A DNA stretch of 64,000 bases from Octopus sinensis. Lineage: Eukaryota. The translations under genes were made by a program, and so were the position numbers. The notes below the pieces were generated by a model. That model saw only the letters and a program-made list of their open reading frames with translations, had not been told where the DNA came from and did not search any database. This document shows, in pieces, positions 348 to 61,513 of the stretch. The stretch lies in NCBI RefSeq assembly GCF_006345805.1, contig NW_021837025.1, forward strand, positions 186,001 through 250,000. The letters are read 5' to 3'. Position 1 is the stretch's first letter, and each line of letters starts with the position of its first letter.

Positions 348-2056
348 ATGGGAAATGCCAGTGACGGCACGTATTTCTGTGCTGTCTTATATTCACAGAC
401 TAGTAGCATAAAAGGGAACATCAGACGTGTGAATCGAAAGCCTCCGGGAGACCTCGCCGCCCATTTCATCGACGAAAATGTCACAAACCCGGAAGAATCT
501 AAACCTGACGTCACGGGAATTTCCCAGTACTGGGAAGGTCAGGAAAATGTATTCTGACATTTCTAAAACATTTAAGCTTTTCGACAAAACATTCGTGCAG
601 CACAAACCCAAGTGGTTCGAAAAGAAGGGACTTTTTTCTGGTTTGGGGTACCCATAGATTGTTCGTAGAAGGCAATGTGAAAAAGGAGACAAAGAAAGAC
701 GTCGCAAAGTCCAAAAAAGACAAAAAATCCGAGGATAAACAGTCATCGGATCCCGCAAAAAAGAAGGATATCAAAACCGATCAAGTCCAAAAAATTGGGC
801 CCGAAAAGAATTTGGAAAATACCGCCAAATCTCAACCAGAGGGGACACCAGCGTCCTCTAAGAATGTCAAAGACGTCGCAAAGTCCAAAAAAGACAAAAA
901 ATGCGAGGATAAACAGTCAATGATCCTGCAAAAAAGAAAGATATCAAAACCGAGCAAGTCAAAAAGATTGGACCCGAAAAGAATTTGGAAAATGCCTCCA
1001 AATCTCAACCAGATGAGACACCAGGATCCTCCAAGAATGTCAAAGACGTCGCAAAGTCTAAAAAAGACAAAAAATACGAAGATAAACAATCAGTGGATCC
1101 TGCAAAAAAGAAAGATATCAAAACCGATCAAGTCCAAAAAATTGGGCCCGAAAAGAATTTGGACAATGCCGCCAAATCTCAACCAGATGAGACACCAGCG
1201 TCCTCCAAGAATGTCAAAGAAAAAGTTAAGGATTCAAAAAAACACGCATCCAAAGTGAACACAGAAAATGTCGAGAAGACCTCAAAGGTGAAACCTTCAA
1301 AAGTCATCGAAGAAAAGACAGAAAAAGATCAGAAAAAGAAAAAATCAATGAAAGAAAAGGAAACGAAAATCAATAAAATACCAAAAGACGATCAAAAACC
1401 TGAGATTAAAGTCTCCATCAAAGCGGAAGCCGAGAAGGTAAGCCAGTCCAACAAAGTCACACAAAATCTGAAAGAGGTCGAGACTAAGGAGAAGGAAGAC
1501 AGTAAGGGCAATAGAAAGATCCAACTGTCGAGAGCTAAAAGTGTAGGAGTTAATCCTGACCTGAACTTGGTTGACGAGGAAGTATTTACTGCTAAGCATA
1601 AGAGACGAGAATCTGTATTCCATGGTCGATAGTGACCTGTTTTAGGAAAATCAAGTCAAAAATAGTAATTTCATTGAGATTCTCTGTGAGGACATCAGTT
1701 TGTCGTCAGTCGATGAGAACAAAGAGGAAAAAAAGTTGTCCAAATTTATGTTGAAACATAGAGGTAAATTGGAAATGAAAGTGTCCTCAGATTGCCAGAA
1801 ACTTCCATTATTCCCAGAAATGGACTTTGTGATTACGGGAGATTCATCCTCGAATTTAGATGAAAATAAACAAGAGAACATCGTCCTTCGGGACAAAAAT
1901 AAGAAGAAATATGATAGCAAATCATCGTCAAAAAGCGAAAACGTACCAAAGAATAAACAATCTTCAATAAAAGTAGACAAGAATTTTAAGGAACAAAGAA
2001 CAAAGTCAACAAAACAAGTTCAGCACTCCAGTCGCAGTGAATGTCAGAATAAATAA
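348..2056 (+). CDS. Lys/Glu/Asp/Ser-rich low-complexity protein with three 58-aa repeats; multi-exon, one frameshift
   Basis: ORFs 348-557, 659-1258, 985-1632 and 1700-2056 share the strand and composition. A 31-nt GT-AG intron at 1615-1645 joins the last two in frame. The N-terminus MGNASD is a possible myristoylation motif. No recognisable domain; exon limits are uncertain. Confidence 0.5.
698..1218 (+). repeat. Three tandem copies of a 174-bp (58-codon) unit
   Basis: GACGTCGCAAAG recurs at 698, 872 and 1045 (periods 174 and 173). Copy 2 lacks one base near 920. Confidence 0.95.
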
Positions 2057-3494: not shown

Positions 3495-6400
3495 GTGCAG
3501 AGAGAAGTTTATAGTTGTTTTGGTGTGTGCATGTACGTTTCCAAGCAGTTAAGGAAAACGAAACCTACGGGCCTTCCTGCAAATAAAAAGAACTTAAAAA
3601 AGACAGGACCGTCGCCTATGGGACCTCACAATGCCACAAGAGCTAATGGTGTTAAGAAGATCTTGTTGGTGATGCTGCCAAAACTAACTTGCATTCTCTT
3701 TCTGCGATCATCGGAAATGTCAATGGTGTCTCTGAAGGCGAATGGGTGTCTCAGATTGCCCTTGCCACGAAGCAAAGACTTGGAAGGATGCCAAGAGGTG
3801 GTTGGAACCTTGTCCTGGAGAAGTTCAATGAGAAGTACTCGGCAAAGTGCTCCAGTTTATGCCAACTAAAGAGCATGGCTAGACGGAATAACAATGTGCA
3901 AGGGAGATGCGACTCTTCCAGAGTGCAAGATGATGTGGACGTAGAAATTTCCAGTTTCAGAAATTGCCTAGAGGAACTCAAATTCCAAATTGGGAAAGTT
4001 CAGTCTATTCAGAGAGACTCTCGAAAGCCAACTCCAAAGGTGCAACGAAGGATGGTAAAAACTGATATCCTGGCTGGATTAAATTCTGCAATTTATCATA
4101 TTACAAAGATGATCCGCCCCAAGATATTAATCAAATTACCGATATTCTATATGCTGCACAGTGTGCTTATTTGGCCTTAACTACGAAAGCCAGACCACAG
4201 AGCACATGGTTGGAAAACACGGAAAGAAAAATCTCTAAATTAGCAGATGAAATTGACACAGTTCGTTCCTTCTCAAACAAACCTTGCCTCAGGCAGAAAA
4301 GCAAAAGGCAATGGATGTTCTCTGCCGCTACGGATATAAGAAGTCTAAGAAGGGGGAGCTAACCAGAATTGAGACTCTATTGAATGATCTAATTAGAATC
4401 AAAAAGAAACAGATATCTATCCATTCCTCGAGGAAAAATTTCCGGAAAGACAATGCGTGTTTTGAATTAAACCGCAGAAGATTTTATCGAAACTTATCTT
4501 CGAGCAACGAAGCCACCCTGTATGGGTTTGGTGATGGTGAGTGCTTATCATTTTGGGAAGATGTCTGGAGCAAGAAAAATGGGGCCCGTAGTTTATGATT
4601 TTGTGGGTGTGAGGTGTACTGGCGGTGAAACCATGCGACCTCAATTCACAAGTGATTTTATTATGGATATGCTCAAATATGCACCTGACTGGAAGGCATG
4701 CGGATGCGACGGAACGTATAACTTTTTCTTAAAGAAGATGGATTCTTTGCATGGGTTTCTGTGTAAAGAGATAGTCCGAATAATTAATGGAGAGTACACG
4801 CCTGATAGCTGGTTTTACACTGGCGTAACTTACTTGATCCCTAAAAAAAGTGAGTGTGAGACCCCGAAGGACTTACGCCCTATAACGTGTATGCCAACTT
4901 TGTATAAACTTGTCACCAAATGTGTTAATGCCAAACTGGCCGATTTCATCGAGGCATTTGGCTTAATCTCAGATAATCAGCTTGGGACGAGAAAGCAATG
5001 TCAAGGCGCCAAAGAGCAAGCCCTCATTAACCAATGCTTAAATAAGGAGTATGGAAATGGCCTCTATTCTGCTTGGGTCGATGTGAAGAAGGCATTTGAC
5101 TCAGTTGATCACGAGTTCTTGTTCCACGTATTGGATTGCTCTGGAATACCACATTGGATTGTCAGCTTTGTAAAGAACATAGTCAAGAAGTGGACAGTAA
5201 ACTTACATATCGATGGGAAAAGAATTGGGAAAGTAAAGTTAAGCCGGGGAATACTCCAAGGAGATTCATTGTCCCCGCTGCTATTCGTTATGGCGATGGA
5301 TCCCCTAAGCAGGATGCTTAACTCCATGTTTCCCAAACTCGAAATTAGTCGGGAAGATCCCAATATGTTGACATACTCCACCAATCATTTCTTCTTTATT
5401 GACGATCTGAAAATAGTTGCCCTCAAAGAAGATGTGTTAGTCAAAATGATGGAGGCTGTTAATGGATTTTTTGAAAGTGTCGGCCTAGAGATGAATTCCG
5501 AAAAATCAGCATCTAATGTGGAATCTTTATCATGCTGTGAGACTGTCGATGGAATCAACGGATATCGCTACTTGGGTGTACTTGAAGATGGCGGAAGTAA
5601 TGTTCTCAAGAATAAAGTTATGGACTCCATATTGGAGAATGTCAAGAAGAGGATAACTATGTTGTCAAAAACAAACCTGAATGCTGTAAATTTGTTTCGT
5701 GGAATCAATGAATATGCATTATCCCTATATAATTATTATATTGGGCTAATCAATATTGAACCTTACGAATTTGATGAGATTGACCAACAAATACGCCGAT
5801 TACTTACGACTCTCAAGTTACACCTCCAGCCTGCAAATAAGGAGAGGTTGTATTTGGACCGCAAGACCCTTGGAAGAGGACTTGCCTCAATTTCTTTCAA
5901 AAGCGAATTAATGCTCTTCCAGTTTCTTAAAAGTTTGGAAAAACAGTCGACTACCTGTCTGCGGAGGTCGGGTATTCTGCGAGTAATAAAAGGAAAAAAA
6001 TGGCACTTAGCCACAATCGCAGAATTTCTTGTCTCCAAATATGCAGCTGTCGGCAGGGAAAATCTGACCATTGAGTTACTGAAGGACGCACAAAGGAAAC
6101 TCTTGCTTAACCGAATTAACAGTAAATCACTACACTCGGTGATGTTCAAATGTATGGAGGAATCAGATGTCGACATATCTACTTCTTCGCAATGGCTATC
6201 GAAAGGGAACAATGGTCCACGAAGCGAAGCAATGTACTGTCTTTTGCAAGATAGGAATTTGTTCTTTGCATACACGGGATCACTATGCGTCCACTGCAAA
6301 AAAAGCAGACTGTTGACCATCTAGCCACGCGGTGTGGTAGGATGCTAAACAGTGATTATCTCCGAAGACACAACGAAGTGGTAAAGTGTATTCATCTCCA

Positions 6401-7031
6401 CTTGTGTCGAATGTATGGAATAAAACGAAGCAGGAAATTGAAAGGACATTCAGTCGTGTCAACAATGTCGACCCAAAATGTCGAAATCAGAGTTGACACT
6501 TCAATTATGACTGAAACAAAGGTTCAATTCAATAAACCTGATATCTTCGTTTATGACAAGAGGAAAAGAGAAATTCATTTAATCGAAGTGGGAGTTACCT
6601 CGCAAGACCGTTTAAAGCAAGTTGAAGTGGAGAAATTTCACAAATATGACCTGCTTGCAAACGAACTGTCGGTTCTCTATGAAGCAAAAGTGAAGATTAT
6701 TCCAATTGTCTTGACATGGGATGGAGTTGTCTCAAAGTTCTTTAAAAGTCATATGGACAAATTATCCATTGAAGAAGGAACGAGGACATACATCCAGTCG
6801 GTTGTGCTGAAGAGGACTCTAGAGAGTATGCTTATTGAACACAGACATGGGATGAAGGTAGACAACGAGGAGTACGCCTCTGCCGCCAATCAACTTGCGG
6901 AGCTGGCATGTCGTGAGGACACTCAGTTGAACAATTACTTTGACGCAGAAATGGAAAATGATGAGAATTTGTTGCAAACTCTTCTTCCAAGCGAAGAAGA
7001 GAAATCACTGACGATCTGGATTCTTAAATAA
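3495..7031 (+). mobile_element. Near full-length non-LTR retrotransposon with RT, CCHC knuckle and restriction-like endonuclease (R4/NeSL-like), about four frameshifts
   Basis: ORF 4522-6324 has RT motifs (LRPITC, DVKKAFDSV, GILQGDSLSPLLF, FIDD, YRYLG). It is followed by CVHC..H....C, RRHNEVVKCIH, KPDI and IEVG in ORF 6285-7031. Upstream ORFs 3689-4598 form the frameshifted N-terminal part. No introns. Confidence 0.9.
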
Positions 7032-17935: not shown

Positions 17936-18480
17936 CTGTCCTAATTAATTACTAACATTTGGGTTGTCAGTATTAACAAATGCCTATTTTTTATAGTCCA
18001 GGGATTCCAGGGTCACTCAGTATTAACTTTGATGGATTGCACTAACCACAAAATTATTCCTACACTTTTAATTCATCTCTTTTGCAATAAGATGATTTAT
18101 AGACTATTTAATTTTATAAAGTTGGAATGCTTATTTAGAAAAAAAATAAATATTTGAATATATGATAATTAAACTAAAATTAAAGAATTTTTCAGGGGTT
18201 ATAAAAGTAAAATAAAGACATTTAAAATGCTAGTTCGTCACGTGGTTTACTTTTTAAATAAATGGCAGAGTAAATTACTGGGAAAAAGGTCAGTCTTCAC
18301 CGACAACACCGTCATAACAAAACTGGCAAATGGATTTCGTGTGGCCACTGAGCGCCTGGACATTCCCACAGCGACAGTACGACTATTCTTGACGAGGCAG
18401 GTGGGACTATTCCTCGATGCAGGATCCCGCTATGAAAACCAGCAGAATAACGGAGTTGCACACTTCTTGGAACATATGCT

Positions 18481-19852
18481 GGTACTTTTGTCGAAGTGGT
18501 CGCAGTTTTTTTAGAAGATAATTAAAATTAATTAATTTTTTTAGTGAAAAATAGATTATTTAATTTATAACCCTCTATCAATAATTTAAATGGTTATTAA
18601 AATTATTTAAAATTTATTTAACCAATTTAGTCATTTTTAGTACGCGGCATCCAAATTCCAGGACTGTAGAAGGAATTTATGTCTTTTACAATCTGTGCAA
18701 AACATTCCTTATAGTTCTGTATTTGTTTTCGCCACATAAATTCTGAAAAAATAACTAACTAAAAAAACCTGCGAAATAAGATCCCAGATGATGTCTTACA
18801 GCTCCTCTTTGAGCTTTATTCTTGCATTTTGCACTTCCCCACATTCGTTCTACTGTCTGGGTGTGCACTCCCGTCGTTGGATCCACAAAGAATTTTCTGA
18901 ATATATTATATTTCCTTACTTATGGTTAACGGTTTCGTGTGTGTAGCCGTTTTCAACCAATTGATCAGTTGAATACCCTAAATGTTAATCAAATAATGCT
19001 AACCTTTCCAGCAGTCACTATAAATAATGCTTCCCACCTCGACATATCGAATTACTAGACTGAGCAGTGTTTCTCTGCTCCTATCCGCGACTGGTTGCAG
19101 AAAACACTGTTTGGTGGCTCGACAAATACCACCGAAGACCCACTGTTTTGGTAAAACTCTTCCAGAGTTGTTTTTCCGTTTGGAAAACATACTCTCGTCT
19201 ACCTCCACAATCATACCAGGACCACCTGAAATAAACATTAATAATACCAATTTTGCCGTCAGATCTTTTAACAAGTGCGTCCACACAGACTTCACGTAAA
19301 AAACATAGCCCAATCGACATATGTATGTTCACCCCAATTGTATTCGTGATGAAGCCATTTGAAGGTATGCCTATCGTAACTCCATAAGTATATGTAGGCG
19401 ATGACATCCTCAAATGGCAATCTACAATTCTCTAACCAGGTATCTAGAATTATTTGAGAGAAATTATACCTTTTTTAATAGAACATTGGACTCTACAACC
19501 AACTCTTGAGCATTTCCAATTGAGCTTCGGTCCCAAGACTAATTCCATCTGATGTCCCTTCGGACATATGCAGAAAATGCACTGCATCCTCCTTACTTAT
19601 TGGGAGCTGTCGGAATTTGATGTTGCATAAGTCCACAACAGAATTTTCCATGTGACCTATAGTGCCAGTTTATATCAATATTAGGTACATGCTCGCCATA
19701 ATATTAAAAAATAGAAAATAAATTAGTAAAAAATTTAATAATATTTTAAATTATTGATAGAGCGACTTAAATAAAATATAATATATTCCACCTCAAAATT
19801 ATTAGATTTTTAAAAGGCCTAAAAAAACTGCGACCACTTCGACAAAAGTACC
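18481..19852 (-). mobile_element. Merlin (IS1016/IS1595-related) DNA transposon, 1372 bp
   Basis: Perfect 34-bp TIRs GGTACTTTTGTCGAAGTGGTCGCAGTTTTTTTAG; 8-bp TSD CATATGCT at 18473-18480 and 19853-19860. Confidence 0.95.
18627..19651 (-). pseudogene. Merlin DDE transposase with five micro-introns, one internal deletion and one homopolymer frameshift
   Basis: CPKGH..WKC..GC..SIK, REVC, KIGGPGMIVEVDES, QWVFGG, IYSDCWKGY, VNH..FVDP.TGVHTQTVERMW and SYFAEFMWR appear after removing introns at 19444-19469, 19226-19247, 18978-19003, 18897-18919 and 18743-18768. Confidence 0.9.
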
Positions 19853-21259
19853 CATATGCTCTTCAAAGGCTCCACTCGGAGGAGTCAGATGGACTTGGAA
19901 CTGGAAGTCGAGTCCATCGGAGCCCACCTGAACGCCTACACTGGATAACAACCTCCAAGAAGTGGTGTTTGACCATCTGCACGCTGTGGCCTTCCACGAC
20001 TCGTCCTTGGCCTACACAATATTGGGTCCCCCCGAGAACATCCGCTCCATCACTCGAGAACACTTGTTGGACTACGTCGCCCAGCATTACACGGCCGACA
20101 GACTTGTCCTGGCTGCCTCGGGGGGTGTCTTGGTTGTCCTCACACTGCAGGGGTCGACCACCAGCACTTGGTCACATTGGCTCGCACACACTTCGGCCAT
20201 TTGGAGACGTCTGTAAAGAAGCCAAGTCCGCCGTATGTCTTCAGAGGATGCGATGTTGGGGGAGTCCTACATTCTAGATTAAAGTGTGTGACCCAGCATT
20301 GGGAGTTGTCCATGTGGCCATGGCAGTTGAGGGGCCTTCGTGGAGTTCTCCCGACAGTCTTCCTCTGATGGTGGCGAATGCGTTGGTGGGGATGTGGGAC
20401 TCCAGTCAAGTGAGTGGACTCAACATGGCCTCCCGTCTGTCTAAACGAGTCGAGGAGGGGCGTCTGGCCTACTCATTCCAGTCGTTCAACACGTGCTACT
20501 CTGATACGGGACTGTGGTGGGACTTGTCTCTCATGTTAGGGGAGTCTACTTTGTCTCAGACCAGCAAAATGCTTATGAAATGGTCAAGGCAGTCACGGAG
20601 GAGTGGTCTGTATAATTCCTATATTCTTAGGAAGAGGATATGTTCTTCCGTGGGGGACCTCGAAGTACAGAATGCCAAGAACCTACTGAAGGCTACTCTT
20701 CTGTACAACCTGGACGGGTCCACGCCTATATGTGAGGACATTGGGAGGTGTGGTGTCTGATTAATCCCAGACATCTTCTGTTCTACGGGCGGAGAGTGCC
20801 ATTTGCCGAGTTTGACGCGAGGATTAACGACATTGACTCGTCCGCTGTTCGGGATATTTGTTCGCGCTACATTCGATTCAAGGAACCCGTCTTGGCTGCT
20901 GTCGGTTTGTCTCATCTTCTCAGTTTAAAGGACCCACCCAAAATATTCCCGATTATTCCGTTATTCGTCCCACCTTGTCTTGGTGATTTTCAGTTTTTAA
21001 AATTATGTATTATTTCCACTAGTTTTACTGCGATTTCGTGATTATCTGGTTATACTACGAGCACTTTGTACATTTTATTTACAGTCAACTCTCGTTAATC
21101 CGAAAAATTCAAATCGACTTTCCCTTCGGATTATGAAAGATTCTAAAATTTATAAAAAGATTCGAATCCGGACCTCTGAATAATGAGCAAAACTCTTATT
21201 CTAATATCAGAGCAGAAATGTAATTAAGTCAAATAATTATCTTTAATTAATGTTTCTTC

Positions 21260-31732: not shown

Positions 31733-33271
31733 TTAAAACAAGGAGATAGTCTCACTAGCCGAAGGACCGAGACTGATCCACCTGACTAGAAATAAGAAAA
31801 AAGTGTGACCTCTGAGTCTGCTTAGTGTCTCAACACACCTCACATACTCCTGGGCGTTCACAGGCAAGTCCTCAAAGCGGGATATTGCCCGAATGTCACA
31901 ACACCACCCCGGTAGTTTGTGGTAGACAACCTCGACTTTGGCCAACTCCTCACAATTGGCTGAACCAATCACTCCCAAACCAAACCAGGGACATGGTCGA
32001 TAGTGAAGCCATCCAGAAGGTAGTGACTGCCCACGTATAGCTCCTCCAGGTCACTGAGGACATCCAATTTGGTAAGGGCAATACTAAACACACTAAAATA
32101 GAGAAAATACAAACTAAATCCATTCACGATGGCCGAATAGCGCATAACATGACAGTCCAGCCACCCACAACGTCTCACTCGGCCTGTGGTCACTCCAATC
32201 TCCTTCCCCTTCTGCTGCAACATCTCTGCTGCCTCCTAAGCCAGTCACTACTCCAACTACATCACTCAGTTCGGTGGGGAAGGGCCCACTACCAACTCTC
32301 GTCGAATATGCCTTGAACACCCCGATTATGTCACCCACGTGTTTCGGAGGTATCCCCAACCCCGTGAAAACACCACCAACCGCACAGTTCGATGACGTCA
32401 CATTGGGATAGGTCCCTTATATATATAATCGATAATCCACCAAAATCGATATCCAGCATGAATCCGTTGGCCCCTTCGACCAGGATGGATTTGCCTTCCT
32501 CGATTTTGCGATTCAAAAAAATGGAGGTGTCGGTGACTGTGGCTTTGAAGTAGTCCCTGTACTCCTGTCCAGTCACCCAGGGGGGGCCAACCTTGTAGGT
32601 CTCCAGTTCGGCCTCCACGTCGACGGACAGAGAGGGGAACATTGCCTTCTGCACATCCACCAGACTGACAAATCTGCTCGATTAACACACACATTCACTT
32701 TTCTTCAAAAATAGCCCAATCGCCAACCAAATCAGCCAGTTTGAGGACAGTTCGATTGACTTTGGAGGAATAGCAGGGACCAATCCCCTTCTTAGTTGTG
32801 CCTATTCTGTCCTATAAAGACTGGACTGTACTTTTTGTGGTCCCTCAACTGCTCTTGTGCTGCGTCCACGTCCTTAAACATTTGGAATACTTTTATATGA
32901 ATTGTACTCTCACCAATGGGGGCTCTGTTTGAGATTATTAGACGACTTCTCAGGTCTTTGAGTCCTTTCATTTCGGCCTGTTCGATTTCGTGTTTGAGGT
33001 CGGTGAGGGACACGACGACTCCATTTCCTGGGGATGTGACTAGTGGGGTACCGATGACTCCCACGACTGACTGGTGACACACGCCGGAAGGGAGGAGGTG
33101 GAAGAAATATGTTTGTCCACCAAAGACCACGGTATGGCCGGCATTGGAGCCTCCCTGACATCTGCAGACGTAGTCGTAGGTCGGGGAGAGTTGGTCCACC
33201 ATCTTACCCTTCCCCTCGTCTCCCCATTGGCCACCTAATATTATATCCACACGTCCTGGTCTAGAATTCAT
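31733..33271 (-). CDS. ADSS: Adenylosuccinate synthetase, 428 aa, ten introns of 24-27 nt
   Basis: [81 protein letters not shown]. The 1539-nt span minus 252 intron nt gives 429 codons. Confidence 0.97.
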
Positions 33272-37901: not shown

Positions 37902-38939
37902 CTATTGAGTTAATTCATCTGCAATTTTGTGGGATGTCAGTTTGTCCCAGTCAATGAGTGTTTGAGTTATTGGAAGACCTCTGCGGAGAGCTTTGAAGTT
38001 CTTTTCTAACATTTCAGTAAAGTTATCATCGAGTTTGTATTGGTAGTTGTCCTCCGCCTTCCTGATTCTCTGCACAATTTTGTCGACCAGTTCTTGCTCG
38101 TTCTAAACACATTTCTTATAAAACTCAACATTTCCTGACACTTGAAACTCTTTTTTGGAGTTGGAAATAAACTGGACGTTTCCATTCTCAAAGTAGTGAG
38201 TCTGGGCTACAATTGAGGGGATTACTTGCAGACGCATATCCCCTCGCATGCTGGTCTCGAAAGTGGAAGGATCAATGTCGATTATCCACTGAGACCGCAT
38301 CCTCGCATTTCTGTCATGTCCGAATATATAAACGTGTATTTGCTGTCCATGTAAAGATGGCTTTCGATGCAGGCCTTGAGGGACACACAGTCGGCTGATC
38401 TGCTGCTGACGATGAGGCACTCTCCCCCCTCGTAAAAGTCCTCCACGTAGGCTTTGAGGGAGTTTTGGAGAAGGGAGTGGTAGGGCTCCACCAATTCCAA
38501 TTTCTCCTTTTTTATGTCGCTGGTCTTCATTGTGAGGGAGTCCAGGCTGGGCTGATTAACGGGTTTGGCCACCTGAAGGACTTTTGGCTGAGGGGGTCGT
38601 AGAATCGGTTGGTGTTGGGGATCATGTTGTAGGGGGTCAGGAGCACCTGGGTGACTAAGTGACCTCACTTTGTAGTCCAGTCCATGCACCGACGTTTGGC
38701 AGAACTGCTGACTGTGGTAGAACATGAGGCGTCTAGGAAATGTTGGGAGGTTGATTACTGTTGGAATACGGGCTTGAGGGAGTTGTCGTTCTGCAGGAGG
38801 ATTGTCAGGTCTGGGAATATCACGTGTGGGCAACCATTCACGATCGACTGGTGTTCCCCCGGGGGGATCATCGACACAAAGTAGTCAATTATGCACTTGA
38901 ATGAACAAGGATGGCTACCTTGATTTCTTCTAATCTCAT
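37902..38939 (-). CDS. CAPZA: F-actin capping protein alpha subunit
   Basis: PPGEH..IVNDL..LL.ND, RMRSQW, LQTHYFENGNVQF, FKALRRGLPITQTLIDWDKL. Introns of 22-27 nt. Confidence 0.92.
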
Positions 38940-39064: not shown

Positions 39065-41230
39065 CAGTGGTTCTCAACGGTGGGCGATTCGCCCCCAGGG
39101 GCGATTTTTTCTGCCAGGGGGGCGATGGCTGATTGCTAATATTTGAAAAATTAAAATCTTATGTTAGAAGTCGATAATCTTTGAAAAAATAAAAATATAT
39201 AATCGAGTCTAATAATATTTATAATATAATGATATTTGGTACTTTTGTCGAAGTGGTCGCAGTTTTTTTAAGAAGATAATTAAAATTAATTAATTTTTTT
39301 AGTGAAAAATAGATATTTAATTTATAACCCTCTATCAATAATTTAAATGGTTATTAAAATTATTTAAAAATTTATTTAACCAATTTAGTCATTTTAGTAC
39401 GCGGCATCCAAATTCCAGGACTGTAGAAGGAATTTATTTTGAAAGGATATCCACATTTTGCAGAAAATGCACTGCATCCTCCTTACTTATTGGGAGCTGT
39501 CGGAATATAAATTAGTAAAAAATTTAATAATATTTTAAATTATTGATAGAGCGACTTAAATAAATATAATATATTCCACCTCAAAAATTATTAGATTTTT
39601 TAAAAGGCCTAAAAAACTGCGACCACTTCGACAAAAGTACCGATATTTTTATTATATTTTATTTAATTTCTAAGCGTGATTTCTAGTTATCTTTATGGGT
39701 CGTGTTCAAAAAAAGTCAGAATGTATAAGATGAATATATTTTTTTGGATTTATTAAAGATCCTCAAGATCCTAATAAACCACTTTGTCTTCAATGTGGTA
39801 CAATTTTTTCGAATGAGGCAATGAAACCGTCTCGTTTGATTGAACATTTAAAGCGAAAACATCATAATTCAATTGGAAAAAAGCCAGACTTTTTTCTAGA
39901 ATTAAAAAAGAATTTTGAAAATAAAAACACCTTACCGTCAATCTTTAATAAAAATATATCTCAAAATGTCTCTGGATTATCTTATTCATATAAAGTTGCA
40001 GAGATAATCGCAAAAACTGGTTGCATTATTATTTTAATTTATAGGTAATGCCCGTTCGATTGCAGAAAATGTCATCCGTCCTTGTTTAAATTTATTTATA
40101 AACGATATCTTACAAAAAGATTCTTCAAATATTATGAAGACTATCCATTAAGCAACGACACTATACGAAGAAGAATTGATGAAATTTCTAATGAAATTGA
40201 ACAATCTTTAATTTTATTTCTCAGAAAACGCAAGTTTTCAGTCCAACATGACGAATCAGTTGTCGTTGATAATCAGTCAATTTTGATGGCATATGTAAGG
40301 TATTACTTTTTATAAATACTTTTTATAAAGATATTTCGATGATGATTCTATTTTGCAAGAAGAGTTATTATTTGCAAAATCTTTGTGATATTATTTGATG
40401 CAATTGTTGATTTTTTAAGATTACAAGAAGAATTTAAATTGTTTGATTCCTGCAAAATTCATAGAAAAAATATTTTTAATTTAAATTGGATTTTAAAAAA
40501 TTAAATGAAGTTTCATTGGCTTTACAAGGAGATTATGTTAATTTAATTGATTGCAAACGAATTATAAATACATTCATTGAAAAAATTCAATTTTACAAAT
40601 TTAATTTAAGTAATAGAAAATTTGGAAAATTCGATTTTTATGACCACACTTTTGATGACAACGATCTGAAAATTTATGAATTTCATTTAGAATCTTTGGA
40701 ACAAGATTTGAAAAAAAGATTTGAAGATTTAATTAATTTAAACTTTTCTGATTGGATGATTAATCCTTGGTTTCCCATTAATTATGATTCTGATGATGAA
40801 TGTCAAGAAGAATTAATAGAACTAAAAAACGCCGAAGAACTGAAATTAAAAATGAAAACCTGACACAATTCTGGGGAGAAAAATCTATAAAAATGAAATT
40901 CCCGAAATTATGGGAAAAAATGATGCCAATAATATTATGTTTTCCTACGTTATACTGCGTAGAGAGAGGATTCAGCACTCTGAATAGTATGATCGGAAAA
41001 AAAAGAAACAAACTAAATATAAAAGAAAGAGGCGACATTAGAATTACACTTACGAAAAGAAGTACAAATTTTGAAAAACTTGTCAATCTTCATCAACCAC
41101 AAGGATCTCATTAAAACTCTTATTTTTTAAATAAAAATTTTTACTAATGAAATAAGGGGGCGATATAAAAATTGGAGGGACGAAAAAAATTCCAAGGGGG
41201 CGATACAAAAATAAAGGTTGAGAACCACTG
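39065..41230 (+). mobile_element. Buster-type hAT transposon with decayed, internally deleted transposase
   Basis: TIR CAGTGGTTCTCAAC at both ends; TSD CTCTAAAA (39057-39064 and 41231-41238); empty site visible in unit 2. Motifs PLCLQC..SNEAMKPSRLIEHLKRKH, LSNDTIRRRI, FSVQHDES, YCVERGFS, DIRITLT. Confidence 0.93.
39238..39641. mobile_element. Merlin deletion derivative (404 bp) nested in the hAT element
   Basis: Same TIRs and subterminal sequence as 18481-19852; flanked by a GATATTT direct repeat (7 bp). Confidence 0.93.
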
Positions 41231-41376: not shown

Positions 41377-42311
41377 ATGAAGAGGTTGTCAATGGTTGTT
41401 GTAAAATATAATTAGCGGAGTGGACTTGGCCTACACAGTATTCAAAGCAGCCATCAACGAACGTCTAGCATACCCCCACCCAGTCTATATTCTCCACGGC
41501 TTCCAAAGCAGCAGGACTCGCTGGTCCCCGGTGGCCGAGGAACTGTCCAGGAAGGGGATAGAGGTACAACTCTTTATACAAGACAAGACAATCACCGTGG
41601 AAGCACGGAATCACGGAGACAGTCCCTACGTCGACGACCACAGCCACCAAAACATGATTAAGGACGTGGAGAGACTTCGAATAAAGTTGGGTCACTCCAA
41701 AATAAGCATTGTGGGCCACAGCATGGGAGGGATCACCGGAATGTTCTACGCCCTCGAATATGTAGTCCCCCACCCACACCGAAGGGTCCCTCCTTGGCCG
41801 ATTTGGTGGTTGTGGACATCACTTTGGCCCCCCGTGGTGGAGGGAGTCCCCACTTCGAGACCATTTCCCGAATTCGGATACCAGAAGACCCCACAATGAC
41901 CCGGGAACAAGTCGTCGAGCACATTCTAGCCAACACAGAATCACTCATTTCTGTTTTCGTTCTTTCTTATACTCAGAGAAGTGCTCTTGAGAATTTTTTG
42001 AGTGCCAAACTGGTTTTTAAGGAGGGGAAATATCAGTTTACTTTCAATGAAATGCTGGCCAGAAGAGGACACCAAATTGGGAGTATTCCTCCAGGAGTGT
42101 GTCCCAAAAAAGTGCTGTTTGTAGGGGGAGGTGACTCCACGTACATGACGTTGGTCCACTTTTGTCACGTGCAGTTCCGAGGGATTGGAAATGACGCAAA
42201 AAACACTTTCCGAACCAGCAAGTGGTGTACATTGAGAATTGTGGACATTTGGTTTTCGAGGACGATTTTGAGGCATTTACTAAGACTGTGGTCGACTTTT
42301 TGGTTGGGTGA
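41377..42311 (+). CDS. ABHD11: ABHD11-like alpha/beta hydrolase, copy 1
   Basis: ILHGF, VEARNHGDSP, GHSMGG nucleophile elbow, VVVDI, VLFVGGGDS, CGH. Introns of 23-31 nt. Confidence 0.82.
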
Positions 42312-42462: not shown

Positions 42463-43115
42463 ATTATTATTTAACCCAAGAATCACCAACAGTTAATTAG
42501 GGTAATTAATTAGGTGATTCCAACAATCCTCAAAATCTTTCTCAGCTTTTCCCGATGTTGGACTCTGGACCCAACGCAAGTGCGGGACGGGCGGGGAGCA
42601 GTTTTTGTGAGGAATTGGAGTGGGGTGATGTGCTTTAGAACCCAAGCGGCGCAGGCATAGCCAATTGTTGGTTCGATGAATTGTTTGTAGAGAGTGCCGA
42701 GAGCCGCGAACGGTGTCTTTAGTCCACCAAAAATCGATTTGATTAGTCCAATCTTTCTTTGACTGGATCCGATGGCCTTCTCTAAATGGGCAGTAAAACA
42801 CATGTGGGTGTCAAAAGTGACCCCCAGAATTTTAGGGTTCTTCGTGAATGGAATCTTTTCGTTGTCCAGAAAAAGATCAACAGTAAGGCTTCCAAGTCTC
42901 TTGTTCGACGTAAATAGGGTAGTGGACGATTTTTCGGGGGAGATGTTCATCCTGTTTTGATATAGCCAAGTTCGAATTTCTAATAAAAGATCTTGTGTTC
43001 TTTTGGAAGCTTTCGAGAGGTCTTGGTCACGTGATTTAATGAGTAGGTCGTCAGCGTAGGCGAGAATGATTGAGTCTTCCATTTCAGGGTTAGGGATGTC
43101 GGATAGGTATAAATT
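42463..43115 (-). mobile_element. 5-prime-truncated LINE (Jockey/I-like) insertion
   Basis: RT end (YADDL, EKSSTTLF, PKILGVTFD), (TAA)n-like tail and 5-bp GAATT duplication (42458-42462 and 43116-43120). Absent from the homologous site in unit 1. Confidence 0.88.
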
Positions 43116-43254: not shown

Positions 43255-44187
43255 ATGAATAGGTTGTCAATGGTTGCGGTAAAATATAATTAGCGGAGTC
43301 GACTTGGCCTACACAGTATTCAAAGCAGCCATCAACGAACGTCAAGCATACCCCCACCCAGTCTATATTCTCCACGGATTCCAAAGCAGCAGGACTCGCT
43401 GGTACCCGGTGGCCGAGGAACTGTCCAGGAAGGGCATAGAGGTACAACTCTTTATACAAGACAAGACAATCACCGTGGAAGCACGAAATCACGGAGACAG
43501 TCCCTACGTCGACGACCACAGCCACCAAAACATGATTAAGGACGTGGAGAGACTTCGAATAAAGTTGGGTCACTCCAAAATAAGCATTGTGGGCCACAGC
43601 ATGGGAGGGATCACCGGAATGTTCTACGCCCTCGAATATGTAGTCCCCCACCCACACCGAAGGGTCCCTCCTTGGCCGATTTGGTGGTTGTGGACATCAC
43701 TTTGGCCCCCCGTGTTGGAAGGAGTCCCTACTTCGAGACCATTTCCCAAATTCGGATACCAGAAGACCCCACAATGACCCGGGAACAAGTCGTCGAGCAC
43801 ATTCTAGCCAACACAGAATCACTCATTCCTGTTTTCGTTCTTTTTATACTCAGAGAAGTGCTCTTGAGAATTTTTTGAGTGATACACTGGTTTTTAAGGA
43901 GGGGAAATATCAGTTTACTTTCAATGAAATGCTGATTAGACGGAGACCCCAAATGGAGAGTATTTCTCCAGGAGTGTGTTCCAAAAAAGTGCTGTTTGTG
44001 GGGGGAGGTGACTCCACGTTAATGACGTTGGTCCACTTTTGTCACGTGCAGTTCCGAGGGATTGGAAATGACGAAAAAACACTTTCCGAACCAGCAAGTG
44101 GTGTACATTGAGAAATGTGGACATTTGGTTTTCGAGGACGATTTTGAGGCATTTACTAAAACTGTGGTCGACTTTTTGGTTGGGTGA
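43255..44187 (+). CDS. ABHD11: ABHD11-like alpha/beta hydrolase, copy 2
   Basis: Same exon structure and catalytic motifs as copy 1; one intron is 23 nt versus 24 nt in copy 1. Confidence 0.82.
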
Positions 44188-45589: not shown

Positions 45590-46933
45590 ATGTCACTCCG
45601 CAAACATTCCTGTTCGTCCAAAAAAAGCAAAGAAGAGTCCAATTTCTGGGACATTGGAGGATACACCCCAACCTGTCGTCGAATAACCAACGGAATAAAA
45701 TCACTCGACGACCTGAGAACATATTTGGGGGAGAGAGCCCAATTAGCCCAGAACTACGCGAAAGAACTGAACGAACTGTCCAACAAATGGAAAGGAAAAC
45801 TCTCAAAATGTAAGCAAAGCAAAGCAGCACACAGCAATCCCCATAGCGACGGCCATATTTATGATAACCTGATAGCCCAGGAATACGCCACAGCCCGACA
45901 GTTGTGGGAAGAATTGCTGGAGGAACCCACAAAAACGTGTTCAGTCCAAGTCGAGTTGGGGAGGGCACTCAATTCGAGACAGGGACAAGTAAAGAAGTGG
46001 ATAGTGGACAAACAGAGGGAGTTATTCCACAACAAGAACATGAAGGACCACCAAAGTCGATTCCAGACAGTGAGGGGGTGAGTAATGGGGTAGGCACAGA
46101 AGGAGTGGGCTGTGAGGGTCACCAATATGAGGAAGGCCAGGGAGGAGTACGACTGTGCCTGTCGGAGAGTCCACAATTTTGAATTGAAGAGGAATATAAG
46201 CACGTGTGATCAGGGAGTGGTCCAAGACAGTGTCAAACAACAGGAAAAGGCCACAAAACTAAAGAAACAGCAACAGGATGCCAAAATGGTGTATATTGAG
46301 GCCATTCGACTGGTGAATGAGCGGAGGGAGTGCTACTCGCAGGAAATGATGAGAATATTCGAGTCCTGTCAGCAGGTGGAGAAGGAGAGGATTGACTACT
46401 TCTCCAGCATTGCCCTCCTCATGGCGGATCTCCTCCACAAACATAACTGTGTGGACATGTCTGCTGTTTATTCCGCAATCCAGGGAAGACTGACGGAGGC
46501 GGACCCTGAGAGGAGTCTGAAGTACTGGTTTGATGTGAGAGGCCCCTCCTCCCCTCTGCCGGTCTTCGAGTTCCAGGAGTCGAACATCAACGAGGATGTG
46601 GAGATATTGGTGGCCAAGTCAGTCCGCCACTCCGCCCCGGCCGAGACATGTTCATACAGGCAGAAGAACAGTGTGGAGACGAATGGAGGTAAGCAAGGGA
46701 GTGAGACGTACTCCCCTGGGGAGGAACAGCCGGTGGTGGCACTGTACGACTACGAGGCGGGGGAGGGGGATGAGTTGTCCTTCCGAGCTGGTTTGTGATG
46801 GGACTGACTGGCAGGGCAGAGAATGATGCGGTTCAGTCAGGAGGACGAGAATGGGTGGGTTAAGTGTATGGATGACCAGGGACAGTATGGATTCGTCCCC
46901 TCCAAGTTCATAAGGGATCAGTTACTCCTCTAG
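45590..46933 (+). CDS. PACSIN: PACSIN/syndapin (F-BAR plus SH3)
   Basis: NFWDIGGY..T.RRI..G, ERAQL..NYAKEL.E...KW, QQVEKERIDYF, VALYDYEAGEGDELSF, ENGW, GFVPSKF. Confidence 0.9.
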
Positions 46934-50523: not shown

Positions 50524-53471
50524 ATGTTTTCTTGTGGTGCAATATTGTTTTTGTTGTGTTTATCACATCTATCTGGTCAAAAGTGCCAAAGTTGTATCTA
50601 TAATATCCAATTTAGTATATGTCGTGACATTTGAAGGATATTTCACTCCACATTTTCTCCACAAACTGATAACTCGTCATCTCAGTCAATCACACGATTG
50701 GCATATTCTTCCACGAAACAACACAAGAACATTCACTGACTTTATACAGATATGTGTTAGTCGTTCCCACATCAATTCAAGTCCTGCTTTACCCCTCCAC
50801 AGCCAATATATCCCTTAAAAAGAATTTCTCTCCAACACTATTATCGATTATTTTCCAAACCAGCTAATTTTCCCGCCTCAATCCACAACATTGCCCAAGC
50901 ATTGGGAGCCCCCTCTATTTGGAAGACAGGGACAGGGAAGGGGGTCAAATTGGCCGTGTTCGACACTGGACTGACCGACAGACACAATTATTTTTCCCGC
51001 CAAAAAATAATCGATAATGTGGATTGGACAGACGAGGGGACCTCCAGAGACTGTGAGTGATCATTTAAACCAGCCCAGTGAACGGACATGGGACATTCAT
51101 GGCAGGGCTGATAGGGGGAGGGGAGGACTCGGTGGCCCCCCAAGTCGACCTTCTCATCATGAAGGTCTTCACCAGCAATCAAGTTGACTGTCCCCACCTC
51201 ACAAGGTCTCCAATACGGGCTGGTTCCTGGACTCCTTCAACTACGTGCTGTCCCATGGAGTGGACATAATTAACCTCAGCATTGGAGGACCTGACTTTAC
51301 CGATTTGCCCTTTGTGGATAAAGTTGTGTGGAGTAGTACAGGCAGGTTAGAGAAGTGGTGGCTGGAGGGGTCATTGTGGTGTCCGCTGCGGGAAATGACG
51401 GGCCAGTCTTTGGGAGTCACAACAGTCCGGCAGACCAGTCGGAAGTCATCAGTGTTGGCAGTATTGGATTGGATGGCCGAATCTCCTCATTTTCTTCACG
51501 TGGGATGACTCTGTGGGAACTTCCGTGGGGGATAGGTCGTACTAAGCCCGATTTGGTGACCTTTGGGGAAGGAGTGGTGGGGTTGGGGATCACCACTCCG
51601 CGGACAAGTCTAAGCGGGAGTAGTGTGTCCGCGGCTATTGTCTCGGGCAGTCTGGCTCTCCTCCGTTCCGTGATTCCTCTCAACCCCGGAAGTGCCCGAC
51701 AGATTCTGGTCGAGTCGGCTGTGTTGGGGGATGAGGGAATCACGGAACAGGGAGGTGGGAGGCTGGATCTCCTCAGTGCTGTCGAACATGCGAGAAAATA
51801 TATTCCTCGAGTCAGTCTGCATCCGTCCTACATTGATTGGAGGGATTGTTTATACATGTCTGACATATGTGGACAGTCTCTGTACGAAGGAGGACTCCCA
51901 GTCTTCATCAACGTGTCCATAATCAATGGTCTGAGTGTCACTAGTCGAATCACTTCCCCCGTAATTAAGCATAAAGGACGTGTAGCCTACGTGGGAGTAT
52001 AGTTCAGTGGGAGGACAGTTCATTCAGGTCGGGGTGGACTATTCACAGGTCATTTATCCTTATTTTGGGTATCTGGCCTTGTCCTTGTCTGCATTGCCGG
52101 GGGCTGTTTCCGGGGAGGTGGAGGGGAGTGTCGTGTTATTTGTGGACTCGTTGGGGGAGACTCAAAGAGTGGTTCTCCCCCTTCGAATATCTGTCGTGTC
52201 TCCCCCTCCTCGGAAGTAAGATTGGAGTGTTATTGGAAGTAGACGTATTCTGTGGGATCAGTACCACAGCATTGGATATCCCCACGGAATAGTCCCCTCT
52301 GATTTCCTGGGAGACGTGTCCTTTGATCGGTGGTTGTGTGCTGCTCATTTGCAGTCACGGGGACACAATTTACACTAACTTTCGGGAGTTGATTACTGCA
52401 TTGAGACAGGAGGGGTATTTTGTGGATGTTTTGAGTATTTTGTGTATTTATGGAGTAGCCACCCGGGTGACCTGTCCTTCTGTCAATCTTTCTGCATATG
52501 GTTGTGTGTTCTATTCATTGTAGGACTGTTCATGGTTGTGGACCCAGAGGACGACTTTGGTCAAGCTGAAATCACTTATATCAACGATTCTATTAAAAAT
52601 GGACTGTCTCTTTTCATTGTGGCGGATTGGTACAGTGACGTGATCCTCCAGAGACTGAGACAGCCTCCAATGTCTGGATTGGTGTGTTATTGGTAGATAT
52701 CCAATCATCGGGGGAGCCAATGTGCCTGCCTTGAATCGTCTTCTCCGTCCATTTGGGATTGCCTTTGGGTGGGGATTTATTCTTAGTTGTAGAGAGGGGG
52801 CACTATCTGGGGCATTTTTCTACAAGGGGGGCAAAGGTGGTGTGCTGTGAGTCACTTTTAGTATATATTGATGGGGGAGTGCCTATAATTCGGTTTCCTT
52901 CTGAGGGACGACTTTTTTCTGTTCCTCTTTTTGACAAAAGCAAAATGTCGAGTGATATGCGGACTGATCATTATATTGCTGGATTAGTCGAGAATGTCGG
53001 TGGGGGAGTCATTTCAGTCCTCGGGGACTCCTCCTGCCTCGACAGTGCTGGGCTGAGTTGTCTCTCAATGGCCATTTCCCTTGTCGGTCATTCTTTATCT
53101 CATCCACGCATTTCGTTGCCCGAGTTTATTCGCCCTCCACAAGTAGTCGAGTCCGAGGATGTCATTTTTGAGTGCAAAGGTGGGCATTGGTGACTTACAA
53201 GATTGTGGAGACCTTTCCCTACTTCGGGCCAATGTTCCGAAATGTGGGATCCTCACAATTCCGGCCAGGTCTGTGGAATCGAATGTCCCGTTGTGTTATT
53301 CAGTCTATTAGTAGATTCAAGGTCGCCACTAAGCCGTCGGGTTGGAATAATATTTCGTTTATTGCTGAGTCATCTGATGCACGTGAATATCACGGGAGTG
53401 TTCTGTTTGGGGTGTTCTGTGTTATTATTTGTTTATTACTTCTCATTCGTGTATGCATGCGAATGTGTTGA
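50524..53471 (+). CDS. MBTPS1: Site-1 protease (subtilisin/kexin isozyme 1)
   Basis: Signal peptide; [17 protein letters not shown] prodomain; [58 protein letters not shown]; C-terminal TM. Confidence 0.95.
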
Positions 53472-60290: not shown

Positions 60291-61513
60291 TTATAAGCAT
60301 TTTCGTACAAGTGAATGTCCGAAATTATCATGAGAACTAATTTCCTCCACAAAGACGTCGACTGGAACTTGGGTGACCTTAAGAACAGCCCGACGAAGGT
60401 CAGTATCGGCAGAAGTATTATTAGTAATGCCCCGATTCATGTCTTGGGAATAACTAGTTTGTTTAAAAGACAGCAGGGATTGGTCAGTCTTCAATGTGTT
60501 CAGAATTCCTTTCCGAGAGGGCAGGTTGACAGTCAGTCGAAAGAACACGTGGTTGTCCACAGACCTCTTCCATAAACTTTTGGCCTGTCTTTGATTCTTC
60601 ATTCGATATGTTTGTGTTGTGTATTTCCCTTTTTGTCCGAACTTGACAATAAAGTGGAGTCCTCTGTAGGACAGTTTGACAATCTTTAGCCACGTGAATC
60701 GGAACATCCTGAGACTGTCCAAATATATCACAATTCCAATGCAGCCCACTCCGAATGTAACTGCCAGTCCGTCGATTACTTCCCCCTCAAAAAATTCGAA
60801 ACTATAGCGTGGAAGTTTTCTGACAATGTCGAGGAAGTGCACGTCGGCCTCCGTGTTGGTAAGTTGATTCAACATTTTGTGGGCCTCCCGAATTGTGGCC
60901 AAGTATTCCATCGAGGGATTATCCATCAGAACGTAATTGATGGCCTTCTTCTGGTAGTCTTCGGTCATTTGGTACTCTCCCAACTCACTCTGAAGACAGT
61001 AGGAGGCCAAAAGTATCTGCACTCCGAAAGAACATTCGATTTTGTTTTCTTCAATGTCTTTCCGGAGTTGGAGACACAGCATGTACTTGGTCAGTTCATT
61101 CCCCACTTTGGTGGGGTCAGGGGGATAATACTTGACCCCAAACACCACAATCTCGTCTAAAATATTTGACCATAGCAGACACCTTTGATCGGCTTGTCCA
61201 TATTTAGCCATTTTCTCTCACTGAATCCCCGAGTAACGTAGAAGGAGAAAAAGTTGAAGTCCGTTATTCTGTGTTGGTCACAGAACATGTTCAACACAGT
61301 TTGTGCTAATGTGTTCTTCTAAAAACAATTTTTCAGTACAAATACGTCTTTGTCGATTGTGAACTGCTCTCCAGTCAGATGTATTACTACACAAGGCTTT
61401 GAAATGCCACTTAGTTTTTCTGGTCGTCTATTTTTGGGTGTTTTGTTCGTGTTTGTGGGCATCATTCGGTAAGAACTGTCGAAAGAAAGGTTGCTCATGT
61501 TAAAAGTAGACAT
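60291..61513 (-). CDS. Band 4.1-family FERM-domain protein; 3-prime end uncertain
   Basis: FGVKYYPPDP, TKYMLCLQLRKDI, LLASYCLQSELG, EAD..FL..VRKLPRY, FTWLKIVKLSY, LWKRSVDNHVFFRL. Confidence 0.88.

Follow-up and report, generated by a model that had tools for sequence, protein, structure and literature searches.

Transposase genes whose introns are spliced by the host are well known, the P element being an example, and Laski, Rio and Rubin reportedly described in 1986 that the third intron of the Drosophila P element is spliced only in the germ line. The Merlin element analyzed here resembles the P element in having a transposase gene with introns that the host is predicted to splice, and thereby a transposase supply dependent on host splicing. 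The P element differs in that it belongs to another superfamily, has introns of normal size and is under a tissue-specific control shown by experiment. A second comparison is offered by the Tc1/mariner elements Sardine, Thon and Anchois of Paramecium, which are likewise DNA transposons with predicted host-type introns in a micro-intron host, but which belong to another superfamily and reside in a ciliate that removes them by programmed DNA elimination (PMC3464196). For the DDE transposase ORF of Anchois the paper mentions only one potential intron, and it gives no numbers for the other ORFs (PMC3464196).

The Merlin superfamily (Feschotte 2004; PMC8101967) is defined by GG termini, the 5′-GG ends of the inverted repeats being its hallmark, by an 8- or 9-bp target duplication and by a DDE domain of the IS1595 type (PMC8101967). 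The element that we analyzed shares with it the GG termini, an 8-bp duplication, the IS1595-type DDE domain and a predicted product of ~300 aa; what sets it apart is a coding region that holds five introns of 22–26 nt. The bacterial IS1595 and IS1016 elements have a homologous DDE domain (PF12762) and an 8-bp duplication (PMC8101967), but are prokaryotic and have no introns. The words 'intron', 'Dicyema' and 'Mesozoa' do not occur in the Merlin survey (PMC8101967), and neither a dicyemid Merlin nor Merlin introns are mentioned in PMC8101967, PMC6736024 or PMC6543705.

The element lies in a 64,000-nt stretch of DNA (the window) filed under Octopus sinensis. Since the ORF at 60291–61211 is recorded on VCDQ01003981.1 of the Octopus sinensis assembly GCA_006345805.1, we infer that the window corresponds to VCDQ01003981.1:186001-250000 of that assembly. 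Among 5.8 billion proteins no homologue of this ORF was found at E≤1e-5, and it thus has no cephalopod orthologue; the protein itself is present in NCBI nr and UniRef. An exact look-up of ten host ORFs found only the FERM ORF on record. The conserved animal genes of the window have introns shorter than 30 bp. Among animals, such introns have been recorded only in Dicyema japonicum and myxobolid myxozoans (PMC13644364), and the median dicyemid intron measures 27 bp (PMC6543705). In D. japonicum, a species studied in material from O. sinensis, a coding sequence of 1,155 bp has 6.2 introns (~5.4 per kb), and the genome is 36.7% G+C with 49% repeats and many LINE copies (PMC6736024). From the gene structure, the source assembly and the lack of a cephalopod orthologue, we conclude that the contig is probably DNA of a dicyemid parasite that stands within the octopus assembly and the protein databases.

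Eight host introns were delimited in the window (Table 1). A de novo scan for GT..AG segments that join long open frames revealed no enrichment over control dinucleotide pairs; its output served only as a list of candidates, for which conserved motifs and Pfam coordinates provided the check. In the SH3 domain, the profile coordinates adjoin roughly across the host intron. Three of the eight introns belong to a plus-strand peptidase M16 gene (mitochondrial processing peptidase beta-like, 18227–20950), and the Merlin element interrupts an exon of this gene directly after HFLEHM. The left flank stops at position 40 of the M16 Pfam profile, the right flank begins at position 40, and the joined flanks restore HFLEHMLFKGS. 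Separately from this insertion, ~50 profile positions of the M16 gene are missing after AHLNAYT, with a change of frame, and the distal zinc-binding Glu would be expected within the absent part. It looks as if this copy of the host gene is dead, or as if the Merlin insertion is a polymorphic allele.

The element has perfect 34-bp terminal inverted repeats with GGTAC at the 5′ end (the terminal repeat of the family is also given as GGTACTTTTGTCGAAGTGGTCGCAG), and the 8-bp duplication CATATGCT is found on either side of it. The exon 3 piece alone matched Pfam DDE_Tnp_IS1595 (PF12762) with an E value of 2e-6 (28.3 bits, cut-off 27), and a search of 1.8 billion representative proteins with this piece yielded 3849 homologues (best identity, 64%), of which 779 had an E value of 1e-10 or lower. 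All three catalytic residues (D, D and E) are present, VEVDES, YSDCW and TVERMW matching conserved columns in an alignment of 16 homologues. The element is therefore a textbook Merlin in its terminal repeats, target duplication and DDE domain, and because the repeats are identical and the duplication is intact, the copy is young. A perfect 15-nt inverted match was also observed between 18899–18913, inside intron 4, and 19774–19788, in the subterminal region; a meaning for this match was considered and dropped, as it is within chance for A+T-rich DNA.

Table 1. Coordinates of the Merlin element, its transposase gene, its deletion derivative and the host introns of the window
Feature	Position	Strand	Evidence or remark
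Merlin-type DNA transposon, complete, 1372 bp	18481–19852	- (transposase)	34-bp inverted repeats and 8-bp direct duplication
Target-site duplication CATATGCT, left copy	18473–18480	+	identical to 19853–19860
Terminal inverted repeat, transposase 3′ side, GGTACTTTTGTCGAAGTGGTCGCAGTTTTTTTAG	18481–18514	+	100% complementary to 19819–19852; begins GG
Candidate polyadenylation signal, AATAAA hexamer	18613–18618	-	9 nt past the stop codon; putative function
Exon 6, stop codon TAA at 18629–18627	18627–18742	-	reading frame
Intron 5, 26 nt, phase 1	18743–18768	-	junction YFA-E-FMWR
Exon 5, catalytic Glu (HTQTVERMWG)	18769–18896	-	aligned to homologues
Intron 4, 23 nt, phase 2	18897–18919	-	junction VNH-K-KFFVDP; position and phase as the 43-nt intron of L004
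Exon 4, YSTDQLVENGYTHETVNH	18920–18977	-	exon pieces aligned to homologues
Intron 3, 26 nt, phase 1	18978–19003	-	junction DCWK-G-Y
Exon 3, first and second catalytic Asp (VEVDES, YSDCW)	19004–19225	-	Pfam DDE_Tnp_IS1595
Intron 2, 22 nt, phase 1	19226–19247	-	splits KIG / GPG
Exon 2	19248–19443	-	second frame break, T6 run 19298–19303
Intron 1, 26 nt, GTATAA...TCTAG, phase 1	19444–19469	-	junction SIKK-D-TW
Exon 1, ATG at 19651–19649	19470–19651	-	frame break at ~19567, ~10 residues missing relative to homologues
Terminal inverted repeat, transposase 5′ side	19819–19852	-	partner of 18481–18514
Target-site duplication CATATGCT, right copy	19853–19860	+	identical to 18473–18480
MITE, 404-bp internal-deletion derivative of the Merlin family	39238–39641	.	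identical 25-nt termini
Host intron, M16 peptidase, 24 nt	18377–18400	+	motif continuity
Host intron, M16 peptidase, 26 nt	20125–20150	+	motif continuity
Host intron, M16 peptidase, 23 nt	20748–20770	+	motif continuity
Host intron, adenylosuccinate synthetase, 25 nt	32674–32698	-	motif continuity
Host intron, F-actin capping protein alpha, 27 nt	38103–38129	-	motif continuity and adjoining Pfam profile coordinates
Host intron, F-BAR/SH3 gene, 24 nt	46070–46093	+	motif continuity
Host intron, F-BAR/SH3 gene, 24 nt	46791–46814	+	motif continuity
Host intron, Subtilase, 26 nt	51053–51078	+	motif continuity

An initial annotation of this DNA had proposed that the transposase gene is interrupted by five GT-AG introns. 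Re-reading of the sequence confirmed the five segments at the coordinates of Table 1, with lengths of 26, 22, 26, 23 and 26 nt and with GT at the start and AG at the end of all five, and the motifs quoted for their removal (SIKK/DTW, KIG/GPG, DCWK/GY, VNHK/KFFVDP and YFA/EFMWR) were reproduced exactly. The exon pieces were searched separately, and the joins were judged in local alignments only. When eight exon pieces were added as fragments to the alignment of 16 full-length Merlin homologues, each of the five junctions appeared as one empty column, to which the residue of the split codon belongs (D, G, G, K and E), and no insertion or deletion at the five junctions was observed in this alignment. 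In a tblastn comparison of 25 homologues with the element, the frame switched at every segment and the homologue coordinates remained continuous. For example, residues 32–64 of P0062 matched up to 19468 and its residues 65–108 from 19441, and residues 82–156, 156–174 and 178–219 of P0007 matched exons 3, 4 and 5. No residue is lost at the junctions, hence the five segments are inserted sequence and not intronised coding sequence. Four of the five lie in phase 1. No length among the five is divisible by 3, and in four of the five cases retention would lead at once to an in-frame stop; this is the pattern that, as argued in PMC3464196, is expected of introns with detectable retention, and with n=5 introns it is not significant alone.

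The lengths of the Merlin introns (22–26 nt) are close to those of the eight host introns (23–27 nt). Their density, five in 0.9 kb or ~5.5 per kb, is that of a host gene as the initial annotation had claimed, the value for D. japonicum being ~5.4 per kb. The same annotation had called them host-style, which is borne out by length and boundaries but not by composition: the Merlin introns have 21% G+C (18–23% each), against 41% in the Merlin exons and 26–58% in the eight host introns, a small sample, and they resemble the element's own non-coding ends (12–22%). This A+T-richness, together with two frame-breaking lesions that strictly make the copy a pseudogene, would fit the view that the five segments are small random insertions in a decaying transposase pseudogene rather than introns. 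We regard this explanation as very improbable. With the element's own dinucleotide frequencies, the chance that five arbitrary inserts all begin with GT and end with AG is ~4e-13; all five segments fall within the host intron size class, and the removal of each restores both the frame and exact colinearity with the homologues. Moreover, the two real lesions have no GT-AG ends, and in an element as young as this one, with identical repeats and an intact duplication, five independent insertions after landing are implausible. On the evidence of boundaries, lengths and colinearity, we take the five segments to be genuine spliceosomal GT-AG introns, whose splicing we infer. It is highly probable that the element at 18481–19852 is a Merlin of a micro-intron animal, most probably a dicyemid in Octopus sinensis, and that its transposase is split by five spliceosomal introns.

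The initial annotation had expected a canonical Merlin protein once the five segments are removed. Frame and colinearity are indeed restored at the five junctions, but two lesions remain: the length of the resulting message, 902 nt, is not divisible by 3, and the message is read in three successive frames (frame 0, MENSVV...AVHFLH; frame 1, CPKGHQMEL...VDWAMFF; frame 2, LREVC...TKND-stop). The first lesion, at ~19567, consists of 10 residues that every homologue in the 16-homologue alignment has and the window copy lacks; the gap lies between ...AVHFLH and CPKGH.... The second, at 19298–19303, is one surplus T in ATGTTTTTTACG, a T6 run, and parts DWAMF from LREVC. The T run could be a long-read homopolymer error, and one may ask whether the copy is intact in the animal and both breaks are errors of a long-read assembly. 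An extra T in such a run is a typical error of this kind, and the title of Li et al. 2020 indicates that the O. sinensis assembly was built from PacBio reads. The first break, however, lies in the non-repetitive context CTGCATATGTCC, where the ~10 residues missing relative to every homologue denote a deletion and not a base-calling slip, and errors at both sites are accordingly an unlikely account of the broken frame. Programmed frameshifting was also considered for both breaks and rejected, since both require a +1 shift and the first coincides with the 10-residue deletion. With two frame-breaking lesions, the window copy has no open transposase frame after splicing; it lacks a full transposase and is non-autonomous as assembled.

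If the five segments are spliceosomal introns, an intact member of the family would be transcribed from within the element, and its pre-mRNA would be spliced by the host, for whose spliceosome 22–26 nt would be the only size class routinely handled. The translated DDE transposase, ~300 aa long, would have a Cys/His DNA-binding region at its N terminus. This enzyme would attach to the 34-bp inverted repeats and move the element by excision and reinsertion, in a cut-and-paste reaction with an 8-bp duplication. The window copy and the MITE listed in Table 1 would be mobile only in trans, with transposase from another copy. The MITE arose by two internal deletions; of the coding region it retains no more than the ends, without any intron site, and its flanking duplication has 7 matching bases only (GATATTT). 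Three observations favor recent activity of the family, namely the identity of the repeats, the intact state of the duplication and the existence of the MITE; an intact source copy presumably exists. The initial annotation had advised recovering an autonomous master copy, and no other copy of the family was obtained: ten ORF variants of the element were absent from the sequence collection by exact look-up, the terminal repeat had 0 matches when metagenome contigs were scanned for it, and in a word-based protein search the best match to the 104-aa Merlin ORF had 68% identity.

The intron density, equal to that of host genes, would also fit a domesticated host gene that derives from a Merlin transposase and is no longer mobile, and Merlin-like domesticated genes have been proposed in ciliates (PMC8101967). 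Such an origin is extremely improbable here. The locus has perfect terminal repeats and a target duplication, is inserted in the exon of another gene and has a deletion derivative with identical termini 20 kb away; in addition, its reading frame is broken.

Several other elements were observed in the window. A non-LTR retrotransposon at 3689–7031 (+) carries a 600-aa RT ORF (RVT_1, E 7e-31) that overlaps the 248-aa ORF after it, and has no micro-introns; the uninterrupted reverse-transcriptase ORF agrees with the statement of the initial annotation that the retroelements of the window are intronless. A degenerate hAT-like transposase remnant at 39821–41114 (+) adjoins the MITE. It is spread over several frames, with a weak Dimer_Tnp_hAT match (E 0.005), the motif PLSNDTIRRRIDE and a candidate GT-AG segment of 21 nt at 40045–40065, and it may be a second DNA-transposon gene with micro-introns. 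Two near-identical alpha/beta-hydrolase-like ORFs, at 41420–41899 and 43304–43777 (+), lie ~1.9 kb apart with a reverse-transcriptase fragment (42510–43082, -) between them, an arrangement suggestive of a local, retroelement-associated duplication. At 659–1632 (+), a Lys/Asp/Glu-rich repetitive coding-like sequence with KSKKDKK...SQPDETP units runs in two overlapping frames.

The introns of the Merlin were then compared with the genomic DNA of six relatives, L001, L003, L004, L005, L006 and L007. L003 (GCA_001040885.1) is a single ORF of 873 nt without introns, and L005 (Trichonephila clavata), L001 (ENA metagenome) and the protein P0155 (ENA assembly) are contiguous over sites 2–5. L004 (Logan SRR26324622) has one GT-AG intron of 43 nt, located 2 nt after VNH at the position and phase of intron 4, and lacks the other four; its spliced product is open (289 aa). 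L007 (ENA ERZ27277143) has introns of 45, 39 and 38 nt and an open spliced product of 293 aa, and L006 (Logan SRR14454025) has introns of 42 and 46 nt. Two of the sites in L006 and L007 fall upstream of sites 2 and 4, by 7 and 11 nt respectively, and with these offsets they do not hold the same introns as sites 2 and 4; for the third site of L007 there is no equivalent in the window Merlin. The 39-nt intron is found in L007 and not in L006, so that its presence is polymorphic between close copies of one family. In a maximum-likelihood tree the relatives and the window protein fell into one clade of nine with a support of 92/96, the internal order of which was not resolved, and for L004, L006 and L007 the identity was 58–59% over ~180 residues.

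L004, L006 and L007 thus belong to the clade of the window Merlin and also have short GT-AG introns, but these are 38–46 nt long instead of 22–26 nt and number one to three instead of five. The premise that Merlins are intronless is valid for the bacterial relatives but not for this eukaryotic clade, in which introns of 43 nt (L004) and 38–46 nt (L006 and L007) occur. Introns thus recur in this Merlin clade in a lineage-specific manner, and their sizes vary between hosts.

That annotation had left two possibilities, the generation of micro-introns in the element or their shrinkage along with the host, and had advised a comparison of intron positions with other Merlins. The answer is mixed, since the site of intron 4 is shared with L004 and sites 1, 2, 3 and 5 are unshared. 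Because it matches the 43-nt intron of L004 in codon position and phase, intron 4 may have been inherited and shortened, a shared ancestry that is not proven by the tree, which does not resolve L004 as the sister lineage. Introns 1, 2, 3 and 5 were seen in none of the relatives examined; they look lineage-specific and would have been gained in the lineage of the element, the direction (gain rather than loss) being our reading of their distribution. One could propose instead that all five introns are old in the Merlin lineage and shrank with the host, with no gain, and that the intron-free relatives lost theirs, as the shared position and phase of intron 4 and the presence of introns in several members of the clade might indicate. 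With introns 1, 2, 3 and 5 missing from L004, L007, L001, L003, L005 and P0155, and in a clade without internal resolution, many independent losses would be needed, and the introns of L006 and L007 near sites 2 and 4 do not help, being offset by 7 and 11 nt. We therefore find it unlikely that all five are old. A more specific form of the gain reading, namely that introns 1, 2, 3 and 5 arose in the mobile element during its residence in dicyemids and were born micro-sized instead of being shrunk, is put forward tentatively, as a possibility that we hold to be somewhat less probable than its negation.

If introns 1, 2, 3 and 5 were indeed born micro-sized, intron gain would still be active in the dicyemid genome, despite the introns of host genes being regarded as old and positionally conserved, and the Merlin family would be a datable record of the origin of new micro-introns. 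It is reasonable to expect that a conventional spliceosome would be unable to remove introns of 22–26 nt, which would strand the element in its host. Likewise, as the initial annotation had proposed, expression might depend on splicing by the host micro-spliceosome, and this dependence might be a barrier to horizontal escape and allow tissue-specific control. At the level of databases, a 373-kb contig filed as Octopus sinensis probably belongs to a kidney parasite of the octopus, and gene finders that disallow introns shorter than 30 nt will miss or fragment transposases of this type. The window Merlin offers a clean natural example of introns of a selfish element that conform to the extreme intron-size constraint of the host, and through relatives with zero, one and three introns the question of gain or shortening can be put for each intron. 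The element is of interest chiefly for its four unshared introns, which may be recent gains: should they have originated in dicyemids, the family could serve as a system for studying how a micro-intron animal has recently acquired introns.
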